Below are positions 5,491 through 52,622 of a stretch of 64,000 nucleotides of DNA, one piece after another. The position numbers and the translations under genes were made by a program. Origin of the DNA: Antechinus flavipes (taxonomy: Eukaryota); the NCBI RefSeq assembly GCF_016432865.1, contig NC_067398.1, forward strand, positions 657,944,001 to 658,008,000, given 5' to 3'. Below the pieces are notes generated by a model. That model searched no databases, was not told the origin of the DNA, and saw only the letters and a program-made list of their open reading frames with translations. Numbering within the stretch: position 1 is the first letter of the stretch; each line of letters starts with the position of its first letter.

Positions 5491-6702
5491 AGCCAGATCC
5501 AAATCACGTATCGTTGAAACATATTCTGGAAACTGAATGGAACTGGGGTTGGATGTATACTAAGGGCACACCCTGAGCTCCGATCCTTGCCCAGGCCGGA
5601 CACAGCCCTCCCACCTTCGGGCATCGCCTGGGCCCAAGCTCCAGCCTCAGGACCAACCCAGCCCCCAATACCCAGTTTCAAATCCAGCCTTCTCCTGGGC
5701 TCCACACCTCCAAATCCAGACCCTTCCCAGCTCCTGGCCCATCCCTGTGCCTGGAAAGTACACTGCTCTTAAACCAGGGAATCCAGATTTGAATCCCGTC
5801 TATTTACTGCCTGTGTGACCATGGGCAAGCCACTTCTCAATGGCCCTTAGTTTTCTCTTCCTGTGAAGAGGCTGGAGCCTTCCTTCTAGTTTATAACCAG
5901 ATGGCCTTCTGGCCCTTACCTCCAGACATTACCCCAACCCAACTATTAGCTTCTAGATCCATCCCTCCAGATCTGACTCAGTCCTAGACACCAAAATTAC
6001 TCGGGCCCTTCCAGCTGTGAACTTTTGTCTTCAAGCCCAAACCCCAAAAGCCCAGGGAAGGATGATCCCCAGGAACCTTCTTTCCTTTATCATCCTCTTT
6101 TCCTTTTCTCCCTACTCTTGGCTAAATCTTTTGGCCTGGACTTACAGGTCCTTGATAAAAGTGCCTTTTACCAGCTCTCTTCCCCTCCCCCCACAGTAAC
6201 TCAACAGTTCATCCCTTCCCATCTATCCTCTTGATGTTCTGTGGTTCTTTCCTCAGTGTCACCTCCAAAGTCCCCTTCCTCTTCAGCTTTCCCTCCCTCA
6301 CTTTCTGCATAATATTTCTGCCTTCAATATTTCCCAGGGCTTTGTACTCCCCCTACACATTATCCCCACATGGATGACTCAAGGTTGAACCAGCCTTCAC
6401 TCTCTCCCTCAGTTCTATCTCCACCCAACTGGACCCAAAGCCTTCCCTCCTCTGTTCTCTGCCTGTCTCTGCCTGCCTGGAACATCTGAACTTGACCAGT
6501 GTCCAGGGCAGTTGACCCAAACCCTTTACTCTTCCAGTCTCCACCAAAAAGAATAGGGTAAGAAGGGCTGTCATGTTAGCATTCCCACACTTCACCCAAT
6601 CCACAAGGCCCTTGGGCAACCTATCCCCCTACTCTGGAAGACAAGCAGGTGCCCCTTTTAAATTGGTTTTAGGTAGGACCTCAGATTCCTTTCACTGTCT
6701 TC

Positions 6703-9700
6703 ATGAGCAAGCCAGAGTTTGAAGAGCCAGACTGCCAGGTTTTGGCCAAGCAAGAGTCCGAGCATCAAGTCTGGCCTGAGGACAGACACACAGACCAAGT
6801 GACTGCTCAAAAGAACAGTTCATATGCCCATGGCTACAATAAGAAATTACTCTTGGTGGACCTGATCTGCATCCTTCTGGGTAAGTCCATTGGCCAACTG
6901 AAGGCTGAAGTTCAAGGATAGGGTCACAGGAGTAGGTCAAGCATAGCAGGGGGTTCTTCTTTTGGGAGAGGGGCTAGAATGTAGCATGAGCAGCTTTATA
7001 TAAAGTTCCTCAGGCCTAGGGAGCTCAGGAATGAGTTCAATATCCCTTGTTCCTCCTTTCTGCTTCTGACCTGGAACACTTGTAGACCTGTGTGTAGGTG
7101 AAGGGCAGCCAACAGGTCTGGAGGGTGAATGAACAGGAGGAGTCACCAGTAATCTGGCTCACCTCCACCCCAGGTTCTACTCCAACTCTTATTTGTTGTA
7201 GCAAGGCAGAAGAAAACTAGATTGGGAGTGGGAGAAACTGGGTTTTTATATCTGCCCCACCAATTATTTACTAGGTTCTTAGGGAAATCATATTGCTCTC
7301 TCTGGACCTCAGTTTCTCAAGTGAGTAGACTGGACTAAATGATTTTTAAGGGCTTTATGGTTCCAAATCCTGTAGTCTCATTAATGACTCCTTGTTCCAA
7401 TTCTTTCCCCCACTCCCACTGGTCAGGTATGTCACTTTGCTTGGAAGGGTGCAGAGCAACTCCATGCCCACAGCCCTACATCTAAGGATTCCATCAGAGG
7501 AAGAAACTGGGACCAGTCACCTTAGTGTACAATTCAAGTTTTCCAGCCATGTACCAGCTCCTGACACATATTTTTGAGCTGGTGACTCTCTGGAGGAGGT
7601 CAATATGTATTATGAACAAGGAATTCTAGGACAGCCCAAGACCCCCTTCTTCCATGTCATACCTGTCTCAAAACACACCCTGACACAATTACAGAAACAC
7701 TCACTTCCACAAGAGAATCAGGGGCTCACACCCCTGTTTGGATGCTCACAATCCCAGACTTTTTCCCAGCACCAGGAGGGAAACACAGGCCAGACTACCC
7801 TTCCATTCCACCTTCAGAGAGCAGAAAGACAGCCAGAATAGTGACCATATTATCATCCCTCATAACTTCTGGTCAGAGTCTGGGCCATTGAGACCCCCTT
7901 CCCTAAGGCTTTCCCTCATCCCATGTTGTAACAAGAAAAACCTGGGAACTATCTTTTCAGGAAAGTTGGATTTCTTCCATGCCCCTCCCTGCCCTGAACA
8001 TGTGCAGCTCTAGACCTTCATCTTGTGTGATAATTTAGGAAATCACTGGAAATATTGTTCTATTTCCTAGTCTTCATTCCCTTCTTCCTGTGTGAGGCAA
8101 ATATCATAGACCCCATCCATGTTGGCTTCTTCTGCGAAGACAGTAGCATCAAATACCCACTAAAAGTTCCGACCATTGACAAAACAATCCTCGCCTGCAC
8201 CGGCCTTTTCATCTCCATCACCTCTGTAAGTGGGGAAGGGAGAAGGAGCACTTCTTAACCAATGCCCTTCCTTTCTCTAGGCCTTGGTTTTGTCATCTGC
8301 AAAATGTTGGGGTTGAAAAAATTTATTGCTAAGGTGTCTTCCAACTCAACTAGTCTCATACCCTAAGGTCCTTTCTAGCTCTGATATTCTATGAATATCT
8401 ATGCAACCAGGCCCAACAAATAAAATATACAGCATCAATTCGTTCCTCAAAGCGCTATCACATAGTTGAATCTGAAGTCAAAATCTGACCTCCAATTCTT
8501 GCTAGTTCTGTCATCTTAGGCAAGCCATTTACCCTAATCTGTTTTCTCATTTGTAAAATGGGGGAAATAATAGTATTTTTCATTTCTATATTAATTTAAG
8601 ATAGAACTTTCTCAACCCCATGAGGCACATCATAGTAGTATTGAGCCTTAAGGGATTAAATGAGATAATGACAGAATAAGTTTTGAAAGTACTTTATAAA
8701 ATCAACATTATTACTCTTTCTTTGGGTAAGAGAAGTCCCAACTCTCTGGACTCAAGAGTCAGAAAGACCTGAATTTGAATTCTGCCTCAGATACTTATTA
8801 GCTATGTGATACCAGGGGAATTTTTCTGTGATTCAGTTTTCTCGGAGGATAATACCACCTCCCAAAGTTGTGAAGATCGACTGAGACATGTAAAACTTTG
8901 CAAATCTTAAAATGCTGTAAAAATGCTTGTTCTTATTATTCAGAAAATTGATCTTTTTTCTGGCAACATGAGAGATCCTACTTTTTTTTTTTTAATGACT
9001 AGCAGAAACTTGTCATTTTCTTGATCAATGAGGAAAGTTCTATATTTTCCCACACATCAAAAATCCTACCTTAGGGAAGGGGCTTGTAGAGGGAATCTGG
9101 CCTTTACCCCCACCTAGATGGAGAAAGATGTCAGGCTTTTGCCCATCCCTCAAATGGAACAAGAGCCATCATACATATGGATGATGCTGGGGGAAGTATG
9201 TAATTAAATTAACTGCCTGATTTCAACTCCTCACATTCCCAACTTTGATTTCAATGGATTCAAACTAGGTTTCCAAGATAGACTCTTACAAATCTGTCAG
9301 AAGCTTAGGGAGGATAATGGGTCTCTTGGGACAAAGTGGGTAATGGATTCAAATGCTGCCACAGATCATCCTGGGAGAATTACAGTGGTTACGCTTTCAG
9401 GAACTGACCTCACCAGTGCTGCTGAGCAGCACCTACATGACCATGCTCTATAGAGAGCTGAGTGCCTTCTTCTTTGGAGTCGCTGTGAATCAGTCTTTCA
9501 CCAGTATTTTCAAGATTGTCACAGGTCGCCTTCGCCCCAACTTCCTGGATGTGTGCCAGCCAGCCTACTTGCAATGCAGCATTGGCTATATCACCAACTA
9601 TAGCTGTACTGGGGACCCAATTGAAGTATCCAGGGCCAGGTAAGGGGATACTGCCAGCTAGCTTGGGAAAGAGTGGAGGGGATGGAGTCTGTAGAGAATA

Positions 9701-10939
9701 GTCATTCAAATGGGCAATTGGGTTATAATGGGAAAGGCACTAGACTGGAAGTCACAAGATCTGGATTCAAGTCCCAGAGTCCTTAGCCTTGAGCCTTCTA
9801 GATTAGACATTCAATGTTCTGTGTCCTAAGGACTCTCCTCACTCATATGTTTCCTGATTTAGTAGATGGCTTCTTGCTCTGATCATAGGTGTTTTACTGT
9901 TCTGTGATTTGTTTGGGGGTATCCATAGCAAAGACTGCCGTAGAAAGTCTTGTATTCCAGCATCCTTTAGGATTTGCATTTCATTAGCTGCCCCTCTTGC
10001 CTACCACTGCAGGAAATCCTTCTTTTCTGGTCATGCTGCCTTCTCTATGTACTGTGTGATCTATCTGATGGTGAGTATCTGTGAAAGGAAGAATGGGAGG
10101 AGGCCATGGGTCTGCACAGAATCCAAAGATGATTCCATTGTGCTCCCAGAGAGAGGCTGTGGAGCTGAGCACAGCATGGCACAACCCAAACAGAACTGGC
10201 TTTTGTCACCCAGGCAGCCTTTGTCTGGGAAGCCAAGCAGCCATGCCAGGTCATGTGAGAGTAGTGGGACAGGCAAAAAGCCAGAATCCAGCCCTCTGGG
10301 AGGGCTGGGCCTCTTATTGTCCCTCTACCTCCAGCTCTACCTGCAGGCTCGAATGATTTGGAAGGGGTCCAAATGGCTCCGGCTCATGCTTCAAACTATC
10401 CTTATACCCTTGCCCTTGGTGGTGGGCTACATTGGAGTTCAAAATTATTGGCATCATCTTTCAGACATATTCGCTGGCCTTTTACAGGGGCTGATCACAG
10501 CCTTGTGGGTGGTAAGTTCCACCCTTAGGGAAATGGGAACATTAGGGAGCCCCAGATAGTTGTATGAGGATTCTAGTATAGAAAAAAGGATGACCTGACT
10601 GGGACTTGGAACCTTGATATGTGATCTTGAGCAAATTGCTTCCTCCCTGTGAAATGGAGTTTGTGGGGTTGGTGATAAATGGTAAAGCATTCTGAAGTGA
10701 TGAGAATAGGCAGAGATCAGGAAAGAAAGCTTAGGACTATCCCCACCCATAATTCTGGGAGGGATCTGGGACCTTAGATGCCAGAGGTAAGACTGGAATA
10801 GAGAACACACTGCCTTAGTACACCCTTCTTTCCACAGGTCTTCTTTATCTCGGATATATTTTCTTCTGAAAAGTGCTTGTCTTCAGGCTCTTCCTCCTGC
10901 TCTGAAAACCAGGCTTCAAATGAACAGACTAGTTGCTAA
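6703..10939 (+). CDS. PLPP3-like type 2 phosphatidic acid / lipid phosphate phosphatase (PAP2 family) paralog, 314 aa, 6 coding exons
   Basis: Exons 6703-6880, 8071-8225, 9365-9639, 10013-10070, 10335-10511, 10838-10939 (945 nt, phases 1,0,2,0,0). All introns are GT-AG and there is no internal stop. Translation contains DLICILLVFIPF, GFFCEDSSIKYPLK, KIVTGRLRP (C1), RKSFFSGHA (C2), LYLQAR..WKG, HHLSD (C3) and VFFISDIF. These are collinear with PLPP3 as recalled, and the 58-nt and 177-nt exons match it. Divergent termini and the genomic position argue against the PLPP3 ortholog. Confidence 0.9.
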
Positions 10940-11207
10940 TCTTGGGGTCCCTCAACCCCCAGCAGTCCATCAGCCACAGGAAGCTTGGTGTTCTCCCACC
11001 ACTACATCCTATTGCCCCCTCTCTTCTTTCCTACCTCCCCAAACATTTTCAATATTGTTTGAAGATCATGGGTCAACAAATGCAAACTCTACTCTTTCAC
11101 AAAAGTCCTCAACACAACCTGAAGATACCAAGTGACTGGAAGGAATAAGGCAATAGGAAATCCCACCTTCACCTTCATGAGCAATACTCAGCTATAAAAC
11201 TGTAAAG

Positions 11208-11397
11208 CAGGGGTCCTCAAACTATGGCCTGCGGGGCAGATGTGGCAGCTGAGGAAGTTTATCCCCCCTCACCCAGGGCTATGAAGTTTATTTAAAGGAC
11301 CACAAAACAAAAGTTTTTGTTTTTACTATAGTCTGGCCCTCTAACAGTCTGAGGGACAGTGAACTGGCCCCCTATTTAAAAAGTTTGAGAACCCCTA
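11208..11397. mobile_element. 190-bp non-autonomous hAT/Charlie MITE, OC1 (OposCharlie1)-like
   Basis: TIRs CAGGGGTCCTCAAACT and AGTTTGAGAACCCCTA. Degenerate 8-bp TSD ctgtaaag/aagtaaac. The family match is from memory. Confidence 0.7.
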
Positions 11398-11662
11398 AAG
11401 TAAACTACTTCATATGGTTGTAAAACAGTATGGGAAGGAGTAGCCTTCTTCAGGCTATTTTAACAGGAAGCTGGCCCTTCCCTGAGGGGCTTAAAACAAA
11501 AAATCCCACCTCAAATTGGCTCTTTTCATGCCCTCTGTTCATGATAAGGAGGGATGTGTCCAAGAACTTAATGATCACCATTCAGGAAGCATCCTCCCTC
11601 TCAGTCTTTAGCCTTGAGACTTCCTGATGTTCTGCAACAATGTAACATGAATATTATTTTAC

Positions 11663-11668
11663 AATAAA
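11663..11668 (+). terminator. Candidate polyadenylation signal of the PLPP3-like gene
   Basis: AATAAA about 720 nt after the stop codon at 10939. Confidence 0.5.
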
Positions 11669-13149
11669 TGGTTCACTTAGTGGTTGAGGGTGAGATACTT
11701 CTAAGGGACCTGTAGCAATACAGATATTGAATGAGGGAGGGGGATGGTGAAGCTCCACACATTCTGCCCCAAGTAAAAAGTTCCAAGCTGGGAATAAGGA
11801 AACCTGAGTTTTCAACCTAGCACTCCCATTAAGTCACTGTGTGATATTAGCTAAGTCTCTTCCCCTTTCTGGATCTCAATTTCTCTATCTGTAAAAAGTA
11901 AAATGATCTTTAATGACTCTTTAGGCCCTGTCCAAAAGCAAAGCAAATTTCTTTATTCCAGAGATCTAGGATCACACATGAAGCCTCCTCGACTAAGGTT
12001 TGGGCTGGGGGGAAAAGCTCCCCAGCTTGGGGAGAAACCCAATCAGGCTGGAGCCTCTGGAGTACAAGGGATTTGCAGTCACTGCCAGGGAGGAGGGGAC
12101 CGTACAGAGAGATGGGGAGAAGGTAGATTCTTAGCATGGATGGCACTCCAAGTAGGAGCAAATAGCCTGGAAGCCACCATATGTCGCATGTATATTGGTT
12201 CTCCGACTCCCAACACCCAAGAGAGGCTTATTGCGGCATGCAGTCCCGAGACTGACTGTGGGACTCCTTTCGGAATGTGCAGAGCCCATCCCCCCCCATC
12301 CCCATCCCCACTACCACCGGCCCCGGAGCAGCAGAACAAAGGCAGGGCCCAGCCTGCCTCGCCACTGCGCTGGAGATGGGGGGGAGAGGATAACATTAAC
12401 TCCTCCCCAGCCGGAGTCGGGGCCTCCGACACTGGTGATTGGGAAAGCTGTGATCCTCGTAAAATCCTGCGCACGCTAGCCTGGCCTCCGCCCCCCACTC
12501 CATCCAGGGAGCCTTTACGCCAAACCTATCTCCACGGCTCTGGCTCCCCAAACTCATACACCTTGAAGCTCAGATCCTTCCAATCCAAACTGCGCCTCAC
12601 TTGTAAACAGCAGCGCGCGGGGACCAAAGCTCTAAGGTACCTTTCCGCTCGAGATCTTCACCTTCCCAAGCTTTCCTTCCTCACTCCCATTACACGCCCC
12701 AACTCCAACCACTCCAGCCACCTTTTCCCAGGATCTCTGGTCCAAGAGCTCGGGAAAGGAGGACAAGGGCCAGGGAGGTTTGGATCTAGAAGAACGGAAT
12801 GGAAAGCTAGTACCCCCCTTGGTGGGGACCGGCATGGAGGTCAAGTACAGAGTTCACGGCTCGGGCAGTCCCAGAGGAGTTGGGCTGACTAAGCCCGGGA
12901 GGTGGAGATGGGGGAGGAGGAGAGAAAAGGGGTCGGACTCGGAATGGTCACTCCTTCTCCCGCAAAGGGGAAGAGAGGCAGTCGCAGTGCGCAGGGAGAC
13001 GCCCCCACACGGACCCACGGAGAATCGCATGTGGCCACGACCACTGGCCCCCACCCCAGAGGTTGCAGGTGCAGCGAGATAAAACGCGCACGCGCCCTGG
13101 GAGAATTTTAGCTGGGCGGAACCGTGGGAGGGCAGTAAGCCGGATCAGC

Positions 13150-13310
13150 AGGGAGGGAGGGGGCGGGGGCGAGAGTGACGTGATGGTGACGCTGAGCTGC
13201 GCGAGGGGACATATAAGGGGCGGCCGGGCTGGAGAGGCTCACTCAGCGCGCGCCTACCCCTCCCCAGGAGTGCGAGGACTTGAGCGCGCGCGCGCCCCCC
13301 CGCGGCCACC
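13150..13310 (+). promoter_or_regulatory. TUBB4A core promoter and CpG island
   Basis: GC box GGGGCGGGG about 13160, CRE-like TGACGTGA 13176-13183, TATAA 13212-13216, Kozak GCCACCATG at 13311, dense CpG. Confidence 0.75.
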
Positions 13311-16190
<2,880 letters not shown>

Positions 16191-37030: not shown

Positions 37031-39187
37031 AATTCGAGGAAATTGTCCAGGGTTCTATTTTTTTTTTTTTTTTTTTGAGAAACTGCTTCATTACCCTAGT
37101 TCTCATTGGATCAGTTCCTCCTACAGACCCTTACCAAATCTTCCCCAACCAAGCATGCCTTTCTAGTGGTGGAAATGAGAAAGTGCACCGAGAGAATGAA
37201 TATATATTCTTCATTCTGGGAACTTCCATTAAACACGAGATAAACGCATGGCCGGCATTTGACAGAGGAGAGGGGTGAGAGAAGGGGGGAGGAGAACCTT
37301 GAATAATACTCTCAGACCCGGGGGCACCTGTTGTACATGGTGGGTCACTGCCTCTTTAAGGAGTTCCGGAGACGGGCGGAGCCTAATGGTTTAGGCTCGC
37401 GCCGGCAGGGGGTCAGCGGGAGGAGGCTGAGCTCAGCCTTGAGAGCCGGAGCCAATGGTGAGCTGAAGAAGGAGCAGTGGCCGAGCTTTGATCTTGGGAT
37501 TCTCGGCCACGATTAAGCCTTGGAAAGAAGCGGGCGGGCTCATTCTCAGTCAACAAGGCACCTTTTAACAAGACCTGGGGGAGGATTAACCGTTAAATCA
37601 GGTTGGGGCCCCTTGACCCTAATCGGTTGAGGGGGATTATGCGACTCTAGAAAGATCCTGGGACTCTTCTCTCTTACACGCTGCTAGTGGAGGGGCTATT
37701 GATTTCCAAGAAGCTGGGAAACTGAGTCCCGCAAAGGCACCTGGAATAGCACTTGCATCCAGGCACTCGGGATTGGTCACTAGCTTCCTCCTGCGCCCTC
37801 GCTTTCTGAGTCTTGTCATCACGTCTGCTTCCCGACTCCTAAACGGTCTTTCCCACCTTTCTTCCAGTCTTATGCGCCAAACCTAGAAGCCTGATAGCAC
37901 TCCGCCCCCCCCCCCCCACCTCCCTACCCTGCGCTTGTACACATACCATAAACTCTTCTCTCTCTCCCCTCCTCCCCCTCCTTCTCTCTGTCTCTTCTGT
38001 GTCTCTGTTTGTCTCTCTGTCTCTTGTCTCTCTCACCCACATACACACACTCCTTACACTTCCCATCCCTCAACCATCTCTCAGTTTCTTAAATGATGAG
38101 ATCCAAAGCCCAGCAATTCTTCCCCCTCCTAGTTCCTCACCTTCCTGCTCTCCAGCCCCTCAAGACTGAAATGGAGGGGAATAAGTCCCAGAACCCAGAA
38201 ATCTCTCCCTCCCACCCAGCTCCTCACCATCCCCTGCTCGCGGTGACTAGATGATCTCGGATGCCTCTTCCAGCTCTGAATCTATGATCCTATGATGCCC
38301 TGGTGCTGAAGGAATGGAGGATCGAGACCCCAAGAGTTCTAGTCTCTCCGTTCCTCACTACCCTTCTCTCGGTTCTCTCTCAGAATTGGGTCTTGCCCTC
38401 TTGTCTCCTCACACTCCCTGCTCCCACGGGACTGAGAGGAGGGGAAGACCAAGAATCTAGGAATCTCAGCTTTTCACCATCCCCCGCTCTCATTCTAGCT
38501 GTATTGGGAGGGAGGACCCAGGAGTCCCTGCCCCCGAGTCCTCATGATCCCACGCTTTCTGTTACGAGTTACCCACCGAGTGGGTGAAGAGGGGAGTGGG
38601 GGTGGGGCGGTGCAGAAGTCCCATTCCTCAGCACCCGATTCCACGTGTCTAGAGAAGGGAGGGGAGTATCCCTAAACCCAAGAGTGCCGGCTCTCCAGCT
38701 CCTCACCATCCCCCGTTCTCTGCTCCCCCAGAGCCAAGGGTAAGAGTAGTGGGGGCGGGGAGGAGGTGCCAGATCTCCGCCGGGCGGCGACGACAAGCAC
38801 AGAAAGCCTGTCTGCTTGCTTGCCTGCCTGCCTGCCAGCCAGCCACCCAGCCTTCCTCCCAACCTTTCTCCTCCTCCGGGTCGCTTTCCCAGCCCCGGGG
38901 CAGTTGTCTGGGCTATAACGGAGGGACTCGATTGTTGTGGGAGAGCAGTCATTGCTCCAGCCCCAGCCCGGCCCGGCCCAGCCGGGTACCGGCAAGCTGG
39001 GAGAGGGGAAGGGAGAGGGGGAGGGGGAGCCTCTAAGCTCCAGCTGAGCCTGGGCCACCCCCTCTTTTTTCCCTCCCTCCTTCCATCTCCCTCTCCCCTC
39101 CCCCGAGGGCCGGGGGGCCGGGCCGGGGCAGGAGCATGAGGCTGGCGGCCACTGGCTCAGGCATTGGGTGGTAGCCACGGTACAGCC

Positions 39188-46765
<7,578 letters not shown>

Positions 46766-48537
46766 GGGGCTGGGGGTTCCCCCCCTTCCCCTCCCTGCTG
46801 GGTCCTGTCCCTTTCCCTCGGATCCTGGTGATAAGACCAACCCCCTGTGCCAGATTTCTCGGCTGCTCCTGGAGCCTGCAACCAACTGATCTACCCCACC
46901 TGGTCACTGACACTGGATCACCAGAGGAACCTGCCCCAGGATCTGCTCTGCATGGCATTGGCACTGGATTCCCAACCTCTGGTGGAGGTGGGGATGGCGG
47001 TGGCCCTTCACCCCTATGCCCCCTCCCTCCCCACTGCACTGACGTGAGAACCATCTGGTCTCTTCCCCATCCCCCTGTACTGCAGCTCCCCTGGGCCCCC
47101 CGTGGCAGTGCAAATTCCCTGGATCCCTCCTCCGTGTCCCCCCATGATAGTGACACTGTTCTGCTCCAGCCCTGACTACCCCGTCACCCCAGACAGCTCA
47201 GCCTAACCCATCTGTGGGGGAACGCGGGGTCAGGGAGGCACACTGGCTAAGCCCAGCCAGAGGGAGGGTTCCCCGTGGCCTTAGGCAGAGACCCTCCAGG
47301 ACCCCACAGCTGAGGACGAACCTTCTACTTTCTTTCCCCCTTCTCCCATTCCTCAGCTTAGGTAAGAGACAAGTTTGAATAAGGCTGAAAAGGGACCCAG
47401 GACAGGGTTAGGACCTCTTGCGGAGCCATACTGAGGTCCATGCCCCTCCCTCCAGCATCCTCCAAACACACATTCCAATTGTGCAGGAAGAAATAAAGAG
47501 AAAGAAAGAAGTCTTAAAAATCACCCCACCCAGGTCTATTTTTCTACTGGGGTAAAGAACAGCTATTCTCCCAACACACACACACATTCCACACCCTTCC
47601 CCAACCTCCAGGGAATCTCTGTATATACTGCATTTTATAGCTGGATTCTGAGGCTGGGGATGGAGGAGAGATCTGAGAATTAAGGTATTAAAAGGTCTCC
47701 TTCTCTCTCAGAAAGCAGAGAATCTAGTCCCTGTGGAGAGCAGTATCCAGAGGTCCCTCTTCCCCTCTCATGCTCCCTCCCCACTCAGTCTCTCTGCCTG
47801 TGTGTGCACCTTTTCAAAGGGAAACAAATGAATACATTTTTCTAAGTCCCCAAAGCCAGTCTGTTGTGGTGTCTTTATTTGGGGGGGAGAGGAAGACGGT
47901 TCAAGGGGACTTCGGCTCTGTACAAAACTTACCATGCCTGGAGCAAAATTGGAGCTGGGATTTATTGTGCCAGAAGCAACATCACGGGCAGGGAGGAGAT
48001 TTGACAGGAGAAGATTGGCTCCTGACTCAGGTACAGTTGATGTGGAGAAACAGTCTTTCCCAGAGAGCCTCGTACAGGCCCCTGCGGCACATTCTCATTC
48101 CTCAAGGCCAGAGCCCTTCTTCCGGAGGAGGCTCTCGTGGGCGATGGCAGCCTCCCTCCTCCCCCTGCCCCAGACTGGGACCGTTAAGCCAGCAGATAGA
48201 CTAAAGCTCAGGATCGTGAGCTTGGAGGATCCCCGACAAGCAGAACCCACCCTCTCCCTGGATATTGGTATCCCAAGCCCCAGGCATCTGGCCCTAACTG
48301 TTCTCTCCTGGACATAGATAAAAAAATCAGAGAGCTTCCTGTGTCTGCCTTTGAGAAACCCAAGGACGGGAGGAAGGACGGAGCAGAAATAAGGAAATGC
48401 CATAAAATACCAGGACTCAAATTGTGCTAGATAGTGCAGTCATGGACCCCAAACTAGGAGTCAGAGACCCAAAGAACTTCAAAGACCATGTTTCTTCAAA
48501 GATGGGGACTAAAGGTTAGAGACAGAAAATAATACTC

Positions 48538-49591: not shown

Positions 49592-52622
<3,031 letters not shown>

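Follow-up and report, generated by a model that had tools for sequence, protein, structure and literature searches.

Signalling by LPA and S1P is set by lipid phosphate phosphatases (LPPs), of which mammals are generally credited with three (PLPP1-3). In the marsupial Antechinus flavipes a gene of this type on contig NC_067398.1 carries Ile-Gly at the place where the C3 motif of the active site has Ser-Arg. The question raised by this locus is whether such a protein can still be an enzyme and, if not, whether the gene is decaying or is kept for another role. The window that we analyzed is a stretch of 64,000 nt (positions 657,944,001 to 658,008,000 of the contig), and all positions given below count from its first letter unless another locus is named.

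The window is 100% identical to assembly GCA_016432865.2. The exon model is the exact spliced match to the window of XP_051827704.1, a protein of 314 aa which bears the NCBI name "phospholipid phosphatase 3-like" (PLPP3-like). Residues 145-286 match the Pfam PAP2 profile (PF01569) with 77.1 bits at a cut-off of 27.2. The gene is built up as follows:

6703-10939, plus strand: PAP2 gene with six exons, whose boundaries come from fitting the annotated protein to the genomic sequence; all introns are GT-AG
6703-6880, plus strand: exon 1, with the start codon, the cytosolic N-tail and the start of TM1; donor GT
8071-8225, plus strand: exon 2, with the end of TM1, extracellular loop 1 and TM2; carries Val77
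9365-9639, plus strand: exon 3, with TM2-TM3, the C1 motif KIVTGRLRP at 9512-9538 and extracellular loop 2
10013-10070, plus strand: exon 4, with the C2 motif; SGH at 10026-10034
10335-10511, plus strand: exon 5, with TM5 including Pro247 and Pro249, the C3 motif and TM6; phase 0 at both ends, AG and GT sites
10431-10436, plus strand: Ile255-Gly256 replacing the C3 Ser-Arg (Ile255, att, 10431-10433; Gly256, gga, 10434-10436)
10452-10466, plus strand: C3 His262 (nucleophile position, 10452-10454), His263 and Asp266 (10464-10466), all kept
10838-10939, plus strand: exon 6, with the end of TM6 and the C-tail ending in EQTSC; stop codon at 10937-10939

The C3 stretch is encoded on the plus strand at 10428-10469, from tac att gga (starting at Y254) through tgg cat cat to tca gac ata (ending at I267), and reads YIGVQNYWHHLSDI. 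The aligned stretch of the solved PLPP3 structure (chain 25qp) is GLSRVSDHKHHPSDVLAG. The C3 pattern SRxxxxxHxxxD is not matched by the Antechinus protein (IGVQNYWHHLSD), and the C1 pattern KxxxxxxRP (KIVTGRLRP, residues 161-169) and the C2 pattern (P/F)SGH (FSGH, residues 207-210) are both present. The preliminary description of this locus had read the active site in the same way, with Ile-Gly in place of Ser-Arg (borne out also by the exact spliced model), His262 and Asp266 retained, C1 and C2 intact and two prolines in TM5 (LIPLPL; P247 at 10407-10409, P249 at 10413-10415). Its interval for the motif is likewise right; only the peptide quoted with it begins one codon too early, at Gly253 (10425-10427).

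The best sequence match among PDB entries is PLPP3 (25qp, 252 bits), which agrees with the Antechinus protein in C1 and C2. An AlphaFold2 model computed from a 55-sequence alignment reached a pTM of 0.81, with a pLDDT above 90 in the core and a low pLDDT in the N-tail, and the helix of TM5 is broken at residue 246 in this model. The best Foldseek matches of the model are human LPP1 structures (9l0i; TM-score 0.90-0.91, rmsd 2.5 A). The prediction thus indicates that the six-helix PAP2 membrane fold with its extracellular catalytic cap is kept. Besides Ile-Gly, the protein differs from PLPP3 and PLPP1 in having Trp261 instead of Lys before the nucleophilic His, Val77 instead of an interface Arg, the two prolines in TM5, another C-terminus and another chromosomal locus.

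Close relatives were collected by word searches with exon 5 and subsequently with the full Sarcophilus protein. Both returned close relatives from marsupials only, and everything else had at most 45% identity. A HMMER search of 1.84 billion representatives gave identities above 50% in marsupial clusters only and also returned two placental clusters, one from muntjac and one from two kangaroo-rat species. A word search with fish PPAP2D returned teleosts alone and is uninformative on tetrapods. We then compared twelve catalytic positions in 42 non-therian PLPP-type proteins and nine therian ones, with Dromiciops added separately. In the non-therian proteins the K, R and P of C1, the S and S-G-H of C2 and the S/T-R, H, H and D of C3 are invariant except for one or two single exceptions, and the Ser/Thr-Arg of C3 is invariant in all 42 rows as well as in four rows of the king cobra group. 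Each of the nine therian rows has at least one break, affecting the C1 Lys, the C2 Gly or His, one or both residues of the C3 Ser-Arg pair, or the nucleophilic His. The combination differs by lineage:

Antechinus: C1 K, C2 SGH, C3 IG, nucleophile H
Sarcophilus: C1 K, C2 SGH, C3 FG, nucleophile H
Sminthopsis: C1 K, C2 SGD, C3 FR, nucleophile H
Wallaby and wombat: C1 K, C2 SDH, C3 LK, nucleophile Q
A further marsupial fragment: C1 K, C2 SDQ, C3 IQ, nucleophile H
Dromiciops: C1 K, C2 SGQ, C3 LR, nucleophile Q
Muntjac: C1 K, C2 SEN, C3 LR, nucleophile H
Kangaroo rats: C1 Q, C2 SKQ, C3 SQ, nucleophile H

Whether Ile-Gly is fixed in marsupials, as had been asked on the basis of the window alone, can be answered from this alignment in the negative, the other marsupials having FG, FR, LR, LK or IQ. 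The Gly is confined to Antechinus and Sarcophilus, and the Ile to Antechinus and the one marsupial fragment. Marsupial-wide there is only a hydrophobic residue at the position of the C3 Ser, encoded by TTG, TTT or ATT, and everything else varies. From the codons the ancestral marsupial C3 Arg can be reconstructed as AGA, which changed to GGA once, on the branch of Antechinus and Sarcophilus, and to AAA in wallaby. The C2 changes are also of different kinds, with GAT in Sminthopsis (His to Asp), GAC in wallaby (Gly to Asp) and CAG in Dromiciops (His to Gln).

Degeneration is not restricted to marsupials: the orthologs that muntjac and kangaroo rats carry at this locus have broken motifs as well. 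In Muntiacus reevesi the C2 exon (exon 4; 12530-12607 of its locus) contains an in-frame stop (RMSF*SEN), and the annotated protein skips three residues around this stop; the muntjac copy is probably a pseudogene or a mis-model. Because of this stop the placental copies seem to be decaying. The Dromiciops locus holds at 10001-14355 six exons with conserved GT-AG sites and an intact frame of 309 aa, and the NCBI model of 151 aa skips exons 3-5.

A further change lies outside the catalytic motifs. Val77 (8149-8151, exon 2) occupies the position of the Arg of the RGF(F/Y)C loop, which is present in 43 of 45 other PLPPs; all marsupials have Val here, and muntjac and kangaroo rats have Gln. The corresponding residue of PLPP1, R36, forms an inter-protomer salt bridge at the tetramer interface (PMC13745504). 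With this Arg lost in the therian orthologs, the tetramer interface may have been altered together with the active site.

Which paralog is this? The preliminary description had compared the protein with PLPP3. In a maximum-likelihood tree (LG+C20, no PLPPR sequence included) the marsupial and placental proteins form a therian clade (support 99/97), which joins fish PPAP2D (phosphatidic acid phosphatase type 2D) and a set of sequences that includes the king cobra protein (97/91), with PLPP3 as sister to all of these (93/86). The C-terminus points in the same direction: four marsupial proteins and the Dromiciops ORF end in EQTSC, the cobra protein in HQTDC and 114 of 115 fish PPAP2D proteins in QQTVC or similar, i.e., in a QTxC tag, and PLPP3 ends in HHNMV. 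The long N-tail, which resembles that of PLPP3, is also found in PPAP2D.

Gene order may be a third line of evidence. In five marsupials and in kangaroo rat the PAP2 gene is followed by a tubulin gene (444/445 aa) and a DENN-domain gene (DENND1C-like), and in muntjac by the tubulin gene. A TNF-family gene lies upstream of the PAP2 gene in kangaroo rat and also upstream of stickleback ppap2d, where it was the only neighbor observed within 10 kb in fish. In the marsupial loci a tblastn search with the 5' end of the kangaroo-rat TNF gene found nothing upstream of the PAP2 genes, and at one fish locus and the cobra locus no gene was called within 10 kb. The neighbors in the window are the following:

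13311-16190, plus strand: beta-tubulin gene directly downstream of the PAP2 gene, 445 aa in sister assemblies, TUBB4A-like by position
about 39140-46800, plus strand: EF-hand exons and then mitochondrial-carrier exons
about 50150-52620, plus strand: second carrier gene

The EF-hand and carrier genes look like the SLC25A23 and SLC25A41 pair, which would fit a TUBB4A-DENND1C neighborhood. The human block TUBB4A-DENND1C-CRB3-SLC25A23-SLC25A41 adjoins TNFSF9/CD70/TNFSF14 and is not known to contain a PLPP gene. Based on the tree, the QTxC tail and gene order the proper comparison would be PPAP2D rather than PLPP3, and the Antechinus gene would be the therian ortholog of vertebrate PPAP2D, a fourth paralog of the PLPP1/2/3 type that would have its place between a TNF-family gene and TUBB4A. 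We state this less firmly because an AU test does not reject a grouping of the therian proteins with PLPP3 (p=0.066), and the assignment rests on the tree in combination with gene order and the C-terminal tag. The therian proteins depart from PPAP2D of fish and from the cobra group, in which no catalytic residue is lost (all 115 fish sequences have SR or TR). Theirs are partly lost, and their branches in the tree are much longer.

A gene with decayed catalytic motifs might simply be dying, i.e., be functionless and under relaxed selection throughout, with a reading frame that by chance has not yet been hit. The rarity of eutherian copies and the stop in muntjac exon 4 would fit such a course, and so would the pairwise dN/dS values (Nei-Gojobori, five marsupials, 10 pairs), which are high for a PLPP: 0.33-0.37 among dasyurids, 0.44-0.49 against wallaby and 0.61-0.71 against Dromiciops. 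Constraint is weak in this respect, with values of up to 0.7 in the comparisons with Dromiciops. However, nine of the 10 pairs have a dN/dS significantly below 1 (p<0.05), and an intact ORF with the same six GT-AG exons is found in all five marsupial lineages (Antechinus, Sarcophilus, Sminthopsis, Notamacropus and Dromiciops). Frame-breaking indels are absent from the CDS (about 920 nt aligned; the only gaps are of 6, 12, 18 and 21 nt), whereas introns 3-5 of nearly equal length (about 930 nt) differ by 13 of them from wallaby and by 14 from Dromiciops; with 13 expected the Poisson chance of finding none is about 2e-6.

Constraint is also distributed unevenly along the protein. With few substitutions per region, dN/dS is about 0.7-1.0 in the C3 block, 0.14-0.4 in TM1, TM3 and TM5 in most pairs and above 1 in the N-tail. 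Of the 45 alignment columns that hardly vary across the family, those of structural residues (prolines, glycines, loop cysteines and aromatics) are kept in marsupials, as is the QTxC tail, and the changed ones are the C2 Gly, His and Ser, the C3 Arg, Asp and His, and Arg77. We consider it unlikely that the gene is merely dying. The intact frames, the distribution of indels, the dN/dS values, the regional constraint and the predicted fold together argue that the protein is maintained, though not for its catalytic residues.

Could the protein nevertheless still function as a phosphatase whose activity or range of substrates is reduced or shifted? Phosphotransfer would then have to be carried out by Lys161, Arg168, His210, His262 and Asp266 without the C3 Ser-Arg. 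The predicted fold is intact, some purifying selection acts on the gene, and Antechinus and Sarcophilus retain both C1 and C2 together with the nucleophilic His and the Asp, so that residual activity is conceivable. Substitution of the C3 Arg, however, abolishes activity in PLPP1 and PLPP3. According to the cryo-EM study of PLPP3 this residue (Arg245) is needed and the tumour variant R245C is a loss-of-function variant; H199, H251 and D255 are essential as well (PMC13500480). In PLPP1 the substitutions K120A, R127A, S169A, H171A, R217A (the C3 Arg) and H223A brought activity close to the assay control (PMC13745504). Judged by this mutagenesis of the same residues, each therian ortholog would carry at least one inactivating change, and we infer a loss of activity. 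Moreover, Sminthopsis and Dromiciops lack the C2 His, and wallaby, wombat and Dromiciops lack the nucleophilic His, a pattern that would not be expected if selection maintained catalysis; the C3 block with its dN/dS near 1 speaks against such selection too. Both observations also make the shifted chemistry that had been considered for this protein unlikely. We regard a working phosphatase as improbable, and the Antechinus protein is most likely no longer an enzyme.

That the two codons stem from an error in assembly or base calling can practically be dismissed: we found no point in favor of this, Sarcophilus shares the GGA codon, the flanks are clean exon, and of the 31-mers sampled from 6650-11000 fractions of 1.00 and 0.99 occur in the contigs of two sequencing runs, made from two samples of this organism (RNA runs, which came from other organisms, contained 6-10% of the words only). 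A miscall had already been rejected in the preliminary description, rightly so, though the several nucleotide changes on which it relied reduce to one base per codon when the nearest relatives are compared (TTT to ATT and AGA to GGA).

The reading which we prefer, and which we think is probably correct, is that the Antechinus gene is a retained pseudo-phosphatase, an ortholog of PPAP2D whose fold is kept without selection for phosphatase activity and which acts in a non-catalytic manner. The suspicion that the protein is a non-catalytic relative of the phosphatases is thereby strengthened, as the C3 Arg is needed in PLPP3 and PLPP1 and the orthologs carry further and differing breaks. Therian PPAP2D would no longer be selected as a phosphatase, and the residues for phosphate binding and transfer would be free to drift, so that each lineage has its own combination of breaks. 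Those of Antechinus are C3 Ser to Ile and Arg to Gly, the latter through a single change from AGA to GGA that Sarcophilus shares. Purifying selection would still act on the six-helix fold and its membrane core, on the extracellular-loop cysteines and on the QTxC tag.

What the protein might do is a matter of speculation. One option is binding of a lipid phosphate with no turnover. Another is that it joins active PLPP tetramers as a partner or regulatory subunit, in the manner of the PLPPR/PRG proteins. A role as a non-catalytic subunit would be plausible because PLPP1 and PLPP3 are tetramers and, as cited in PMC13745504, LPP hetero-oligomers have been reported (Long et al. 2008).

PLPPR1-5 (PRG) have the six-helix PAP2 fold, substituted critical residues in C1-C3 and no LPA phosphatase activity, and act by binding and scaffolding (PMC9520309). 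They are the closest functional analogy to the Antechinus protein, and we liken them as an analogy only. The Antechinus protein differs from them in its short QTxC tail and in its degenerate residues, which vary between species instead of being fixed. All of the nearest named relatives of the Antechinus protein are PLPP or PPAP2D proteins, and with PPAP2D and PLPP3 as nearest relatives its origin appears to be independent of the PLPPRs.

A more far-reaching possibility, which we offer tentatively and consider rather doubtful as a whole, is that therian PPAP2D is a pseudo-phosphatase of old standing whose origin is separate from that of the PLPPRs. The need for catalysis would have ended before the split of marsupials and placentals, because both groups have broken motifs and lack the Arg of the tetramer interface; most placentals would then have lost the gene, and marsupials would have kept it as a binder of lipid phosphates or as a modulator of PLPP1/3 tetramers.

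If the preferred reading of a retained pseudo-phosphatase is true, a fourth vertebrate paralog has been kept as a protein in marsupials and a few placentals with its active site freed from selection, and nature would then have turned an LPP into a non-enzyme a second time, independently of the PLPPR proteins. A search of the literature on ppap2d, on "phospholipid phosphatase 3-like" and on the evolution of PLPP paralogs found no description of this gene. It is automatically annotated and would be an independently derived addition to the catalytically degenerate relatives of the LPPs. Since a different catalytic residue is broken in each lineage, the orthologs form a comparative series that could be useful for structure-function work. 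Caution is also called for with automatically named PLPP3-like genes, to which phospholipid phosphatase activity should not be transferred on the strength of the name.

Some further observations concern the structure of the gene. Intron 4 (10071-10334) is conserved above the level of the coding sequence, with an identity of 0.97 to Sarcophilus, 0.94 to Sminthopsis and 0.88-0.89 to wallaby and Dromiciops. Prompted by this conservation we scanned 9640-13300 against Rfam and obtained no matches. In Antechinus and Sarcophilus intron 4 is 264 nt long, a number divisible by three, which does not hold for its length in the other species. In the window no stop interrupts the frame that runs from exon 4 through the intron into exon 5 (stop-free from 9858 to 10556).

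The Sminthopsis isoform X2 is without the residues LYLQ at the start of exon 5 (10335-10346 of the window). In the window too there is a second AG 12 nt downstream (cctgcag|gct), so that alternative use of the acceptor is possible. In the frame that continues past the stop codon, 10933-11145 on the plus strand encodes a peptide containing ..KIMGQQMQTLLF.., which corresponds to the alternative C-terminus of the wallaby isoform X2 and of the short Dromiciops model and suggests a conserved alternative last exon.
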